Source: Penicillus capitatus (Eukaryota > Plantae > Chlorophyta). Taken from it: a stretch of DNA of 64,000 nt. This document shows positions 38,255-44,571 of the stretch, in pieces. The number at the start of each line of letters is the position of its first letter. The stretch's first letter is position 1. The stretch spans positions 372,001-436,000 of the forward strand of contig OZ287702.1 of the NCBI GenBank assembly GCA_965649825.1, given 5' to 3'. The notes under the pieces are model-generated. The model searched no databases. It was not told where the DNA came from and saw only the letters and a program-made list of their open reading frames with translations. Made by a program: the position numbers and the translations under genes.

Positions 38255-39980
38255 TGCGCCATAAAGACGACCGTTGAATGTATATCTTTCAAATCGAACA
38301 GCGACGATCGCACAGACGTTTGTTAACACATCAATGTCGTTTGTTGGTCCTAGTGACCATTGCGTACGATGACAATGGATGATAGCGTCAGCACAAAACG
38401 GGCTCAACAGCACGAGCCTCCAGAAGTGTTTGTGGGCGGGGTTGGTGCAGTAAGGTCGAATCCGAGGCCGCAGTCAAAGAGACCGTAATGCACGGAGCGG
38501 TCACCGACGACGTCAAAATGCTGAGCCAGCCAACTCATCTTTCCTTCTCCAATCATCGCCGCAGTGTTGCCGCAGACGGGCTTCGGTTTGCCTGTCTCGA
38601 AGCGATGATGATCATCCAGTTTGTAGGCATTCTTGTGACCCTCAATCGTTCCCTGCGCAGACAAACATACATCACACATCTCAACATTCTATGACTCCTA
38701 GAGTCACACACACTTTGTAGGTCGCAATCTGGCCGTAATCCTCACAGAGAGTCTCCATCATGCCGGGCAACTTGAACAATCTACGTCAGACAGTTGGGTT
38801 TCCCACTGAGCGCCCGAGAGAGAGACCTGTAGGTGATGGAGTAGAAACGCGCTTCTCCGACGACATCCAATAGTTCGGGATCTGTCACTTTGATCTCTGA
38901 AGCTGCCAAGACTCGTGCATCCATGAAACCGACATCGGCGGCAATGCGCTTGAAATCCTCGACATATAGTGCCCCAGAAATACACTCTCCCCAGAGAACC
39001 TCATGTTCCTGAACGTGTTTGGGAAGACGGCGATCGCAATAGACATCACTGAAGTAAAACTCTCCTCCCGGAGCCAAAACTCGATAAACCTCTTGCAACA
39101 CGCGTGGCTTGTCAGGTGAGAGATTGACGACGCAGTTGCTGATAACGATGTCCACGGAATGGTCTTCGATCCCAGCCTTGTCCAAGTACTCGATGTGACC
39201 TTGGATGAATTTCATGTTTGGCTGGGTATAGCCCAGTGTCTTGGTGAACTCCTCGAGGTACTTCTCCGAAACCGCCACTTGCTCTTCTGTCATATCAATG
39301 CCAGTGACGAATCCTTTCTCGCCCACAAGGGCAGAACACACATAACAGTCGCGGCCAGATCCGCTGCCGAGGTCGAGAACGCGCAGACCGTCGATGCCCA
39401 ACGGAAGCGGAGCACCGCAGCCGTAGAACTTCGATACGATTTCTCCCGGCACTTGGCGCATGACTTTGACAATGGCCGGATGAGGGGAACCCCCTGCCGT
39501 GCATGCCGTTGTCTTGAGGTCCTTCGATGTGCTCAGGACTTTGCCATAATAGTCTTTGACAACGTCATACGTTTTCGTTTCTTCCAACTGCGACAGTCCC
39601 CCGGCGGCCGCTGTGGTCACGGTGGTTCCATTGGAATGGCTCATTCTGCGAGGCGGTGTGCGATAAGGAGTACGAAGACGGTGCCGATTGGTTGTGAGAG
39701 AACGTAGCGAGGGAAGTATGCGTGATGCTTGAAATCGGAGTTGGCCGCGTCGATGCGGGGCGCGTGATGTGGACATCGTACAAGAGCGGAGCATCTTATG
39801 GTGCACGCTGCGAAAACCAACGGAAAAATCATCTTGCTATCCGTACAGAATATTCGGAGAATGACACGATCAGCATAGACGTCACAGACTCCTCAAGCAA
39901 ATGCGTCCAATCTGGCGCTCTTGGTCATCCTTGATAGACGACATTCGCATTTTAAGGGTCTCCTGCCAACGCGGCGACAT
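38255..39980. repeat. Tandem segmental duplication unit 1 (about 1.7 kb, arsM plus both flanks)
   Basis: Aligns by eye with about 41790..43510 including introns and non-coding flanks; stop-codon offset 3536 bp. Confidence 0.92.
38404..39776 (-). CDS. arsM: Arsenite methyltransferase (ArsM/AS3MT) copy 1, 2 introns, with possible 44-aa N-terminal targeting extension
   Basis: KDYYGKVL..TTAC, FYGCG, LDLGSGSGRD, ISNCVVNL, LWGECISGALY, C-terminal SCC; second ATG at 39644. Confidence 0.94.
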
Positions 39981-41789
39981 CAAGCCGAGGATCCAGTCAG
40001 TGATTTGATTAATGTCTCTGTTTAGATCTACGATGGATGAAACGAATGAGGTACTGTTTACACAAAAGACCCTAGATTGTGTCAATAACGCTTTTTAATA
40101 AAAACTGCAACCTCGTTTTTTAACAATTCGTCGCGACGAGATCATTACAGTATGACACTTTTTTCCGAAATGTCTCCTGGTTCCCAAAGCTCCACCCGGC
40201 AATTAACTAGCTGTGTTGTTGTAGATTTGCTTAGCGGTTGTTTTATGTTTCGTTGTTGATTTTCGTTGAACTTTTTGCGTCTGTTGTGACTTGATATCTG
40301 CAAACTCTCTGGGCCTGATCTAGACGAGCACTCTAACGATGAATTAACATTCCCCAGCCTTCTCGGCGATAAATCGCGGACGGGTGGAGCGATATGTGGC
40401 CGCAAGTGTCAAAGATATTGTTTGGGCCTCGGACGAGAGAGGAAATTCGAGACTGCATGAGCATCCAGCCAGCGAAACACGAGTAATGGTCCGCATATAG
40501 TTGTGTATAACCAATGCATTGTCAAGGAAAACGGTATTATTTGCTAAGATCCGATTCACTTTCTGAGAAACTCATACCGAGCACTTTGCGTAAACTTTGG
40601 TGAAGGTGTAAACAAGTCAAAAAGAAAAAAAAACGACTTGAAAAACATTCAGTACGATGGTGATCATAAATAAGCATGATTGTAAAAAAGATGGAAACTT
40701 GTTTCTACCTGTTGACAATATGGATGCATGTGGGAGGGACATTGAGAGTCCTCGATCACAGAGTGGGGCCGCTAGCTGCAGTTGATTGGCTAACAATTAT
40801 TCGCAAAAGTGTGAATTTATATTGAGAAAAGGACTTCATCTATCAGGGGCGAAGAGAACATTCTTATCCAAGGAAGCGCACTCGCAAAAGCGAACGTTGT
40901 TGTTCTTTGGACGGCTTGTACGATAACGACCGCAAGTTTGTTGTTGCGATCGAAAGTTGTGGCGTCCAGATTGCGAGTTGATTACTTGGGTGTAGACAGT
41001 GTACGGTATGGGCTAGAGTCAACTACGGAGGAGCGAATAATGCAAAGGTCTTCAGCTTAAACAAGGCAAAGAGGCGATAGGGAAGCCGCAGATGATAATG
41101 GAGAGGTGTCAAGGGGACACGGGCCTTGGACGATTAATTGGACAAAGTGCAGATGGCTGAGGCTGGGTAGGCAGACAAGGGCAACAATAGCTTTGGACGG
41201 TGTGTGGCGCGGACAGCCGGTGATAATAGACCATGCGAGATGTTATAGCGATGGAAGGCGACTTGGAAGGTCGGTCGTTAGGCGCAATGGATCCATTAAG
41301 AAGCACCATTCGTCATTATTTGGACATAAAAAGTAAGGTAAGCCGGTGCACAGTCTAGGAGGCTGAGCCCCGAATGAAAAGTAAGAGCTTCAAAACGCCG
41401 TTTCTGATCAACGACTAGCTGTTCACGTGGACAACATTCAATCGCATTGTGATTGATCAACCTGATTAGAAGAAGATAAATACAGGGCTCTACTTGAGTT
41501 AGGCAAACTTGAAAGGTGTTGATACTGTTGTTAAACTTATTCACATGCAACAACAGCCTTGATGCAGATGCCGTAGTTCGAAATCTCAATGAAAAAGACT
41601 AAATGAAGTATTGGCGCTACATTTCAAAAGGTCTTCGGAGTCTTTTACGTAGAAAAGTGTGTCATGAATGAGTGATTAGATACTTTGATCCCGAAGCGGC
41701 CCCGTTGCTTGACTAACTGTGGTACTTGTATCGTTTGTAAGAACGTTTGAAATTCGCTGTAAGAATAAGCTTTCTATTCTGTAACGCGG

Positions 41790-43510
41790 AGACCATGAAG
41801 ACGACATCCAGTAATCTATCTTTTAAATCGAACAGCGAGGATAACACAGACGTCCGTTTGAATAGGTTAATGCCGTTTGTTGGTCCTAGTGACCATTGCG
41901 TATGATGACAATGGATGATAGCGTGTGCACAAAACGGGCTCAACAGCACGAGCCTCCAGAAGTGTTTGTTGGCGGGGTTGGTGCAGTAAGGTCGAATCCG
42001 AGGCCGTAGTCAAAGAGACCGTAATGCACGGAGCGGTCGCCGACGACGTCAAAATGCTGAGCCAGCCAACTCATGTTTCCTTCTCCAATCATCGCCGCAG
42101 TGTTGCCGCAGACGGGCTTCGGTTTGCCTGTCTCGAAGCGATGATGATCATCCAGTTTGTAGGCATTCTTGTGACCCTCAATTGTTCCCTGCACAGAAAA
42201 ACATACATCACACATCTTATCCATCCATGACCGCTCGAGTCACACACACTTTGTAGGTCGCAATCTGGCCGTAATCTTCACAGAGAGTCTCCATCATGCC
42301 GGGCAACTTGAACAATCTACGTCAGACAGTTGGGTTTCCCACTGAGCACCGAGAGAGAGACCTGTAGGTGATGGAGTAGAAACGCGCTTCTCCGACGACA
42401 TCCAATAGTTCGGGATCTGTCACTTTGATCTCTGAAGCCGACAAGACTCGTGCATCCATGAAACCGACATCGGCGGCAATGCGTTTGAAATCCTCGACAT
42501 ATAGTGCCCCAGAGATGCCTTCTCCCCAGAGAACCTCGTCTTTTTTGAGATGATCTGGTAGACGGCGATCGCAATAAAGATCGCTGAAGTAAAACTCTCC
42601 TCCTGGTGCCAAAACCCGGTAAACCTCTCGCAACACACGTGGCTTGTCGGGGGAGAGATTGACGACGCAGTTGCTGATAACGATGTCCACGGAGTGGCCT
42701 TCGATGCCAGCCTTGTCCAAGTACTCGATGTGGCCTTGGATGAATTTCATGTTTGGCTGGGTATAGCCCAGTGTCTTGGTGAACTCCTCGAGGTACTTCT
42801 CCGAAACCGCCACTTGCTCTTCTGTCATATCAATGCCAGTGACGAATCCTTTCTCGCCCACAAGGGCTGAACACACGTAACAGTCGCGGCCAGATCCGCT
42901 GCCGAGGTCGAGAATGCGCAGACCGTCGATGCCCAAGGGAAACGGAGCACCACAGCCGTAGAACTTCGATACGATTTCTCCCGGCACTTGGCGCATGACT
43001 TTGACAATGGCCGGATGAAAGGAACTCCCCGCCGTGCATGCCGTTGTCTTGAGGTCCTTCGTTGTGCTGAGGACTTTGCCATAATAGTCTTTGACGCCGT
43101 CGTGCGTTTTCGTTTCTTCCAACTGCGACAGTCCACCGGCGGCCGCTGTGGTCACGGCGGTTCCATTGGAATTGCTCATTCTGCGAGGCGGTGTGCGATA
43201 AGGAGCACGGAGACGGTCACGATTTATTGCGAGAGAACTAAGAGGGCAGTACGCGCGATGCTCGAAATCGGAGTTGGCCGCGTCGATGCGAGGCACGTGA
43301 TATGGACGGCGTTCACGAGCGGCGCATCTTACGGTCCACGCCGCGAAAACCAATGGAAAAACATTTCGCTATCCGCACGGGATATTCGGAGAATGACGCA
43401 ACAAACAAAGACGTCACATATTCCTCAAGCAAATGCGTCCAATCTGGCGATCTTGATCATCCTTGATGGACGACATTCACTTTCTGAGGTTCTCTTGCCA
43501 ACGCGGCGAC
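41790..43510. repeat. Tandem segmental duplication unit 2
   Basis: Paralogous to 38255..39980. Confidence 0.92.
41940..43179 (-). CDS. arsM: ArsM/AS3MT paralog copy 2 (catalytic Cys replaced by Gly), 2 introns, ORF intact
   Basis: Same exon structure as copy 1; LWGEGISGALY; no stops or frameshifts in the coding exons. Confidence 0.88.
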
Positions 43511-43662
43511 GTTTCTTTTGGGCCGTACGGCACTTCGATCTGAAAGAGTGGGATAGGTCAGGAGTCGCCATGAGGATGCATTTAAGCGTACTTCATCGCA
43601 CTGGCTGTAGAGTTCTTCGAGTTTGTAGTACTCTCGCGTCCGGGGAGAAAAGACATGGACGA

Positions 43663-44571
43663 TCAGAGATCCAAAATCAATCGATTCCCATTCACTCCTG
43701 CAAGAATTATGTCGAATTTGAGTACGTGTTGTGGGCGTTGGTTTACTAACCGTCGTGTCACAGCGTCAACTACAGGAATACCCCATTCTTCCAATGCCAC
43801 TTTCTCCATTTTTCCCAAAGCAGCATTCATCTGTGTCCGAGACATCGCCGTCAGAATCAAGAACGTCTCGGTCCTAGATATGCACTGATCACGCATGCCC
43901 GCATTCCAGTAGTCATCATTCTTGCCAATGGAGCTTCTTGTGCACATCCAATAGACGAATGGATCGGCACTTGAGTTCGTCAGCCACTATAGCCATTGCT
44001 TTGCCGAACTCTTTCGTCTTTTCTAATGCGTCGTAGTCAATAAACGCTTTCCTCTCCGCGTATTCCCAGTCGAGATCCTCCTCCTCTCTTCCAACAGCCT
44101 GATTCAAAAGTCACCAATAACTCAACCTTTCCACAGAAGGAAGGGCATCGCCTGTCCGTCGCCGTCATTGCTGAAGGCCGCTGTCGCGGCATCTTGGAAA
44201 TCGGCGGAAATCGGATTGGATACGCGAGCATCGGGATCTGGGATGCCATCCATCTCGATCATGGCCCGCTCGGCAACGGTCAACTTCAACTCTTCGTCGT
44301 CATCGGACGCTCCACTTTCGTCACCTGTAGCTCGCCTTCGAAACGTTGTCTTTGCCTACAAGCTTCGTTCCAGTTCCTCTCCTCCTTTAAGCGTCGCCCA
44401 CTTTGAAACTTTCATGTCCGCGGTATCGAGACAACACATCCTGATGCCCCAGACCTCCTCTGTTGCATCGACCGATGAGGCGTCGCTGCGCGGGCCCACT
44501 GCTGGAGAAGGTCCTTCTCTGAACGAATGACATGACAGCAACAGTATCAGCGTCGTCGTCGTACGCATCAT
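43663..44571 (-). CDS. Hypothetical spliced protein
   Basis: Co-oriented ORFs 44356..44571, 43916..44107 and 43663..43947 are linkable by short introns; no family recognised. Confidence 0.5.

Follow-up and report, generated by a model that had tools for sequence, protein, structure and literature searches.

Can an arsenic methyltransferase lose one of the cysteines by which its family is defined and still be kept by selection? This question is raised by a stretch of 64,000 nucleotides from the green alga Penicillus capitatus (contig OZ287702.1 of assembly GCA_965649825.1, positions 372,001 to 436,000 of the forward strand; hereafter the window), in which two arsM genes lie in tandem, head-to-tail on the minus strand, each with three exons and a product of 377 amino acids. 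Copy 1 (38404-39644; exons 39644-38827, 38780-38714 and 38652-38404) is of the canonical type, with cysteine at the fourth arsenic-binding position (Cys-type), whereas copy 2 (41940-43179 from start to stop codon; exons 43179-42362, 42316-42250 and 42188-41940) has glycine there (Gly-type). The answer that we favour, with moderate confidence and as far as sequence comparison reaches, is that copy 2 is a functional ArsM variant with a thiol-poor, repacked metalloid site, selectively maintained beside the canonical copy.

The importance of the residue comes from the biochemistry of two well-studied enzymes. In ArsM of Cyanidioschyzon merolae (CmArsM) and in human AS3MT (hAS3MT), the first three conserved cysteines are C44, C72 and C174, and C32, C61 and C156, respectively, and the C-terminal pair (CmArsM C174/C224, hAS3MT C156/C206) binds trivalent inorganic arsenic (As(III)), its monomethyl form (MAs(III), also written MMA(III)) and aromatic arsenicals (PMC3877260, PMC6138428). 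Three thiols are needed for As(III), two for MAs(III) and one for the dimethyl form DMAs(III) (PMC3877260). Neither As(III) nor MMA(III) is methylated by the human mutants C156S and C206S, in line with the premise of the original prediction made for this locus, that the pair is needed for both methylation steps (PMC3877260, PMC6138428). Reviews attribute four cysteines to all arsenic methyltransferases (PMC6138428), and a survey of arsM diversity, which used the As-binding cysteines as a filter, found them conserved in every retrieved sequence (PMC5552862).

The change in copy 2 lies at codon 221, which is TGT (Cys, 38982-38984) in copy 1 and GGC (Gly, 42517-42519, minus strand) in copy 2, the ancestral state being TGC, as in the relative described below. 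Direct reading of the codons reproduced what the original prediction had reported, including the flanking codons GAG/GAA and ATT/ATC. A chance or assembly artefact was ruled out, given that 59 of 1134 coding bases distinguish the copies, both flanking codons being among the places affected, and that the same Cys-to-Gly change is present in unrelated genomes. In HMMER alignments, Gly221 stands opposite the Cys of the 'GEC' motif of the solved structures of Chlamydomonas reinhardtii ArsM (CrArsM, 5evj; phmmer E=1.5e-133 for copy 2) and CmArsM (4kw7; 6e-82), in which it is Cys224 in chain numbering. The site is probably also that of human Cys206, to judge from the human motif and from CmArsM, whose Cys224 has been described as equivalent to hAS3MT Cys206 (PMC3877260).

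The remainder of copy 2 has the features of an ArsM. The other As-site cysteines C48 (TGC), C76 (TGT) and C171 (TGC) are present, the S-adenosylmethionine (SAM) motif I/VLDLGSGSG is kept (ILDLGSGSG), the terminal CC is retained and the class I SAM-binding domain Methyltransf_31 of Pfam is matched with 103.6 bits against a cut-off of 27. An AlphaFold2 model of copy 2 (predicted local distance difference test, pLDDT, 87.7) retrieved CrArsM 5evj as its top Foldseek match, with a target-normalised template modelling (TM) score of 0.96; on the same scale, CmArsM gave 0.87-0.89 and human 8xt7 0.91-0.92. The NCBIfam model NF008823 for arsenite methyltransferase, a prokaryotic one that does not discriminate between the copies, gave 171.8 bits for copy 2 and 182.7 for copy 1 against a cut-off of 263. 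The three cysteines, the SAM motif, the terminal CC, the splice sites and the gene span all passed the sequence check of what had been said of them beforehand, the span agreeing with the exon model. On these alignments copy 2 is an ArsM/AS3MT homologue failing one defining feature, the fourth cysteine, and it is not filed here as a canonical arsenite methyltransferase.

Whether such a gene is being kept or lost can be read from its substitutions. They were polarised with a metagenome-assembled relative (L001/L002), 84-88% identical to the window and collinear with it over more than 20 kb, which has a single Cys-type arsM at the syntenic locus. The two contigs of this relative (ENA ERZ26696514; 4.08 Mb and 101 kb) carry one Cys-type arsM each, differ by scattered single-nucleotide polymorphisms and small indels and are probably two haplotypes or strains. 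Between copy 1 and copy 2 the ratio of non-synonymous to synonymous rates (dN/dS) is 0.18-0.22, so the check proposed beforehand gave purifying selection and not the neutral evolution of a young pseudogene. On the copy-2 branch, 17 synonymous and 16 non-synonymous changes correspond to an omega (branch dN/dS) of about 0.28 (binomial p=3e-4 against neutrality), and on the copy-1 branch 10 and 7 correspond to about 0.21. A set of 103 near-invariant alignment columns, conserved in at least 97% of 88 Cys-type homologues, allowed the constraint to be localised: copy 2 retains 101 of them, and the sole exceptions are C221G and V201L. Long-diverged Gly-types retain nearly as many (97 of 103 in P0023 and 96 of 103 in P0044). 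The 377-codon frame is open and the introns keep their GT..AG ends, as had been stated; copy 2 is intact, under purifying selection and not decaying.

The second line of evidence is that the same change has been found elsewhere. Gly-type paralogues had been suggested as something to look for, and they were found in several organisms, including the algae Chlorella, Bryopsis and Picocystis. Among 122 sequences, comprising the 120 best homologues and those of the window and its relative, the fourth-Cys column holds C in 115 and G in 7 and nothing else, and the other three As-site cysteines are kept in all seven Gly-types compared motif by motif. In Plasmodiophora brassicae, the Gly-type is the second of two tandem genes (L003, 5956-7386 and 7985-9419), which are 95.5% identical, both intact and separated by a dN/dS of 0.20-0.28. 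In Chlorella vulgaris it is D9Q98_008959, which has a Cys-type gene on either side (Cys-Gly-Cys); in Bryopsis sp. KO-2023 it belongs to a Cys-Gly tandem; in Picocystis sp. ML the Gly-types g652, g654 and g801 are interleaved by gene number with the Cys-types g650 and g799; and Diplonema papillatum has one Gly-type and an array of four Cys-types. The MMETSP transcriptome sequence P0044 is also a Gly-type, which must hence be expressed. A neighbour-joining tree scatters the Gly-types over at least six places; four times, the closest neighbour is a Cys-type of that very species. Codons were read from the DNA of four genomes: Gly is encoded by GGC in the window and likewise in Plasmodiophora, Chlorella and Bryopsis, and the sister Cys codon is TGC in the latter three and TGT in copy 1 of the window. 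A single base change in TGC could just as well have given Ser, Arg, Tyr, Phe or Trp, none of which was seen at this column. Wherever the genomic surroundings of a Gly-type were to hand, Cys-type copies lay beside it or nearby. Copy 2 shares the whole set of traits, with Gly at the fourth-Cys column amid conserved columns, Leu201 and an adjoining Cys-type copy.

Some of these genomes deserve a comment of their own. The public Plasmodiophora brassicae protein P0001 (587 amino acids) is a fused model of the Cys-type and the Gly-type gene (L003 5956-9419, CP145416.1), each of which has its own start, five introns and stop. Picocystis sp. ML, presumably isolated from arsenic-rich Mono Lake, has at least two interleaved Cys/Gly arsM sets (P0019, P0335-P0339; g650-g654, g767, g799-g801), whose Cys/Gly differences are limited to residues 191-215 and 64-73. 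The Diplonema papillatum array (L010 3721-15312, JAPJBO010000186.1) packs four Cys-type genes of 98-100% amino acid identity into 12 kb, and the Gly-type of this species, recorded on a contig of equal length, is located outside that locus. As to the reach of the searches, the representative search returned the best 150 matches, from which the frequency of Gly-types cannot be estimated, and a local search with a 51-residue Gly-type profile returned 143 short fragments and added further Gly-types without being a census. A search for a prokaryotic Gly-type clade with operon context (query P0213) gave no operon clue, the close Gly-type relatives being on contigs of about 1 kb. Its nearest named match, P0350, is a EukProt entry, presumably from a ciliate, and the bacterial relatives are Cys-type.

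The loss of the cysteine is coupled to a second change. When the Cys-type and the Gly-type of one species were compared in five such pairs, two changes alone recurred in identical form, C221G (five of five) and V201L (four of five), the latter seen in copy 2 as codon CTT (42577-42579, minus strand; SD-V-Y to SD-L-Y). All four Leu residues at column 201 among the 122 sequences belong to Gly-types; position 201 is Met, Leu or Ile in the further Gly-types recovered with the local profile and a eukaryotic query, and in about 230 Cys-types it is Val or Ile, without a single Leu or Met. For the association between Leu/Met201 and the Gly-type, a rough Fisher test gives p ~1e-17, on sequences that are not phylogenetically independent. 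In the model of copy 2, residue 201 is near the C-terminal end of beta5 (190-203), Cys171 follows beta4 (164-170) and Gly221 follows a short helix. Strands beta4 and beta5 are adjacent in the class I methyltransferase fold, and residue 201 would therefore pack beside the As-site thiols. On this topology, Leu or Met at 201 may partly fill the volume lost in the change from Cys to Gly. The recurrence of C221G and V201L, both at near-invariant columns, in the Gly-type paralogues of other lineages also upholds the earlier proposal that copy 2 is no mere dosage duplicate.

Other residues have changed in copy 2 as well. An N-terminal patch around Cys48 (codons 26-54; 43018-43104, minus strand) holds six copy-2-specific amino acid changes, Y26H, V28G, S40T, G52S and P54F among them, and within codons 26-50 there are 7 nucleotide differences between the copies, compared with 2 between copy 1 and the relative. 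The substitutions reported beforehand next to the cysteine motifs, G52S with P54F (GGSP to GSSF) and L80F (GAPL to GAPF), were all recovered. The more general statement that substitutions cluster beside the other cysteines held in copy 2 for codons 26-54 and 80; elsewhere, Picocystis and Diplonema show a parallel near the second Cys motif, and Plasmodiophora and Chlorella do not. The announced change of a C-terminal Cys to Tyr is C356Y (TAC, 42006-42008, minus strand), at a C-terminal-domain position that is Cys in 105 of the 122 homologues. This Cys is also absent from the Diplonema Gly-type and, by reading of the sequences, from those of Bryopsis and MMETSP.

The age of the change is a different matter from its preservation. 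The Gly codon lies within a divergence island of 72 nucleotides (codons 199-222; 42514-42585, minus strand), in which the copies differ at 19 of 72 bases (26%; permutation p<5e-5), copy 1 and the relative at 9 and copy 2 and the relative at 18; at third positions the corresponding counts are 12, 5 and 11 of 24. In the remaining coding sequence, the copies differ at 40 of 1062 bases (3.8%), and copy 1 and copy 2 differ from the relative at 113 and 120; at third positions the figures are 26, 88 and 89 of 353. Thus, outside the island the copies are nearer to each other than to the relative, whereas inside it the distance of copy 2 to either copy 1 or the relative is about double that between those two, silent sites included. 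Branch lengths are all that can be compared here, the three-taxon topology test being uninformative for the island. By hand count, the copy-2 changes in the island are about six non-synonymous and about seven synonymous. Positive selection in the island was considered and not adopted, since silent sites share the excess, as is expected of a segment that is old or imported and not of an adaptive burst of amino acid changes. In other species the picture varies: in the Picocystis pair, 8 of 12 amino acid differences are in the same island and three beside the second Cys motif, and in the Chlorella pair there is a bare point change at the site. These observations suggest that the Cys/Gly pair is older than it appears, gene conversion having homogenised all but an island protected by selection, or that a diverged Gly-type donor supplied the island. 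The implication of the original prediction that a fresh mutation had struck a new duplicate thereby calls for revision, because the Gly codon sits in a segment more diverged, at silent sites too, than the split from the single-copy relative. Taken as a whole, its interpretation of copy 2 is partly supported, and the roles that it put forward, namely another thiol, selenium or metalloid substrate, a step linked to organoarsenic metabolism or an arsenic-binding partner, stand as candidates.

What might a protein of this kind do? The pattern of changes suggests that selection favours removal of the fourth thiol while the protein is preserved. Lacking the dithiol clamp of C171 and C221, copy 2 would be unable to hold As(III) or MAs(III) in the canonical manner. 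As a tentative mechanism, copy 2 would remain a SAM-dependent methyltransferase of the arsenic pathway and act on a substrate less demanding of protein thiols, which could be DMAs(III), or As(III) species bound to glutathione or otherwise already alkylated. It would act downstream of copy 1 and in partnership with it, and the outcome would be a third methylation or a changed product spectrum. It is also possible, and we hold this too at well below even odds, that a Cys-type and a Gly-type ArsM form a widespread, old two-enzyme module that gene conversion keeps uniform outside a protected island with Gly221 and Leu/Met201, and in which the Gly-type performs a distinct step. Gene conversion outside the island would then make the pair look young everywhere even though it is old, and candidate steps would be the conversion of DMAs(III) or thiol-conjugated As(III) to trimethyl species, or entry into algal organoarsenical synthesis.

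Several observations weigh against a selectively maintained, functional Gly-type. Copy 2 has accumulated 33 polarised changes to the 17 of copy 1 (p=0.03), about double the rate, and has altered residues that are conserved at about 86-90% (P54F, C356Y), and this faster rate together with P54F and C356Y fits a partial relaxation of constraint. The relative manages with a single Cys-type copy at the syntenic locus, so that a Gly-type is dispensable there. Gly-types can also decay, and at least one looks broken: the metagenome contigs L007 (492-1111) and L008 carry a Gly-type arsM relic (SDMY...GEG) with an in-frame stop and without the region matching query residues 53-180, a missing stretch that amounts to most of the SAM domain. 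On these data, Gly-types that arose independently and an old pair evolving in concert would look alike. The proximity of residues 201 and 221 is that suggested by secondary-structure positions in a model, and the function proposed for copy 2 is read from comparative patterns. Moreover, the laboratory mutant C206S is dead on As(III) and MAs(III) (PMC3877260), and a purely non-catalytic role is therefore possible.

In that role, copy 2 would be a pseudoenzyme that binds SAM, arsenicals or both without methyl transfer and acts beside copy 1 as a buffer, chaperone, sensor or regulator. Besides the inactivity of human C206S on As(III) and MMA(III), the reviewed mechanism, which requires all four cysteines for the first step, speaks for it, as do the retained fold and remaining cysteines, the purifying selection and the tandem arrangement with a copy of the active type. 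The columns of the SAM-binding and catalytic core, however, are kept even in the long-diverged P0023 and P0044, beyond what mere binding would need, and the exclusive use of Gly with a coupled Leu or Met suggests a reshaped pocket, when Ser would also inactivate and can be reached by two single-base routes; we regard a pseudoenzyme as rather unlikely. The opposite position is that copy 2 still methylates As(III) or MAs(III), through Cys48, Cys76 and Cys171 or with an external thiol such as glutathione, as an isoenzyme with altered kinetics or product release. TtArsM, a non-canonical enzyme with only one of the usual cysteines, methylates As(III) (PMC8649762), so that loss of As(III) methylation by copy 2 is not a given, and BlArsM needs only two conserved cysteines, at positions 145 and 195 (review, PMC6950371). 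Three thiols are left in copy 2. The pair required by BlArsM is reportedly the third and fourth, the first two being absent, as Huang and colleagues are said to have found in 2018, and would thus include the very residue that copy 2 lacks; with the human mutant at the fourth Cys dead on both substrates, an isoenzyme of this kind appears distinctly unlikely.

Two further explanations remove copy 2 from the arsenic pathway or from function altogether. The loss of one As-site ligand with the SAM site kept and the pocket remodelled at 201 would suit a methyltransferase of selenium, tellurium, antimony or bismuth species or of a small thiol, its tandem position being a legacy of duplication. Against such a change of substrate, the other three As-site cysteines persist in the seven Gly-types compared, the Gly-type persists beside a Cys-type arsM in several lineages, and the multiple Cys/Gly sets of Picocystis sp. 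ML, with its presumed Mono Lake origin, suggest arsenic; we consider it quite improbable. The last explanation sees a young or decaying duplicate, an incipient pseudogene in which the loss of the Cys was an inactivating hit that preceded disruption of the frame. Copy 2 did receive 13 of the 17 polarisable amino acid changes, P54 and C356 among the altered residues, and the single copy of the relative and the broken Gly-type elsewhere speak on the same side. Nevertheless, splice sites and reading frame are kept, the branch dN/dS of 0.28 is significantly below 1 (p=3e-4), only 2 of 103 near-invariant columns have changed, exactly C221G and V201L recur in parallel elsewhere, always to Gly, and the island is old rather than new, all of which makes an incipient pseudogene highly improbable.

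The organisation of the locus adds to the history of the pair. The two copies lie 3.5 kb apart within duplicated blocks of about 1.7 kb. Block 1 (38283-39978) comprises copy 1 with 334 bp upstream and 121 bp downstream, is 92% identical to 41817-43510 and is collinear with L001 on the downstream side; block 2 (41817-43510) comprises copy 2 with its flanks and is collinear with L001 on the upstream side, which means that the distal upstream surroundings of copy 2 are still the ancestral ones. Both copies have introns of 45-46 and 61 nucleotides with GT..AG ends, at positions common to copy 1, copy 2 and the relative. Intron 2 (38653-38713 and 42189-42249) differs between the copies at 10 of 61 bases, compared with only 1.5-2% in the flanking exons 2 and 3; there copy 2 looks nearer to the relative and copy 1 seems to be the derived copy. 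The spacer between the blocks (39979-41816; 1838 bp) has a lower GC content (0.43), is absent from the relative species and has no long open reading frame (ORF): no ORF of 100 amino acids or more, no Rfam match and no similarity in the rest of the window or the fetched loci were found. An identifiable mobile element was rejected as its origin, for lack of an ORF, repeat copy or Rfam family. The neighbouring genes in the window are housekeeping ones (kinase, TPR, PsbP, DEAD helicase, Tcp11, PUF, RNB), and no ars-related gene was found among them. The closest named ArsMs are those of ulvophycean green algae (Caulerpa, Neomeris and Acetabularia), and the window also encodes PsbP. Three ORF calls in the region are artefacts of the intron-containing arsM genes: 42988-43749 on the plus strand is antisense to copy 2, and 42322-43353 and 38781-39806 on the minus strand are exon 1 frames extending 5' of the true ATG and, at the other end, into intron 1. 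Public collections contain prokaryote-style calls (P0007, P0468, P0015) that cut these genes short at intron 1.

If a functional Gly-type selected to stand beside a canonical copy is confirmed, it would be a new functional class within a well-studied detoxification family. The four cysteines have been treated as defining an arsenic methyltransferase, and a natural variant that recurrently swaps the fourth for Gly breaks this rule. Such a class could explain algal arsenic steps that are still unassigned, such as those to trimethylated species and to the organoarsenical precursors that end up in seafood, and would alter how arsM matches are counted in genomes and metagenomes. The Gly-types also let one see, in an experiment made by nature, what Cys224/Cys206 contributes to the ArsM/AS3MT mechanism; they provide a clear instance of parallel evolution at two sites and a probable one of an island that selection has shielded within a tandem pair otherwise evolving in concert. 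The full-text literature searched, whose coverage does not extend to subscription papers, yielded no account of a Gly-type ArsM paralogue.

The closest known systems set copy 2 in perspective. CrArsM (Chlamydomonas reinhardtii, 5evj) and CmArsM (Cyanidioschyzon merolae; 4fs8, 4fsd, 4kw7, 6cx6) share with it the family, fold, domain order, SAM motif and first three cysteines; unlike them, copy 2 has Gly at the fourth (CmArsM C224), and in comparison with CmArsM it has Leu at a Val of beta5 (V204, counted from the alignment). The laboratory mutants hAS3MT C206S and CmArsM C224A (structure 5jx7) are without the same thiol, and by analogy the C-terminal Cys pair would no longer bind As(III) and MAs(III) canonically. 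However, these mutants are single engineered changes to Ser or Ala, whereas the natural Gly-type always has Gly, usually together with Leu or Met201, and stands beside a wild-type copy. BlArsM (Bacillus sp. CX-1) and TtArsM (Thermus thermophilus) are, like copy 2, natural proteins without some of the four cysteines, both of them arsenic methyltransferases; TtArsM is distant and differently built, and neither is a close paralogue from which only the fourth Cys has been removed. Caulerpa lentillifera, from the group whose ArsM is closest to that of the window (73% identity), also has a tandem arsM duplicate (g1244/g1245; P0003, P0078). In this case, P0078 has lost the second and third cysteines (YGCG to NRSG and SNC to STG), has kept the fourth and has changed 18 of the 103 conserved columns, a pattern that reads as broad degeneration, unlike the two-site signature of the Gly-type.

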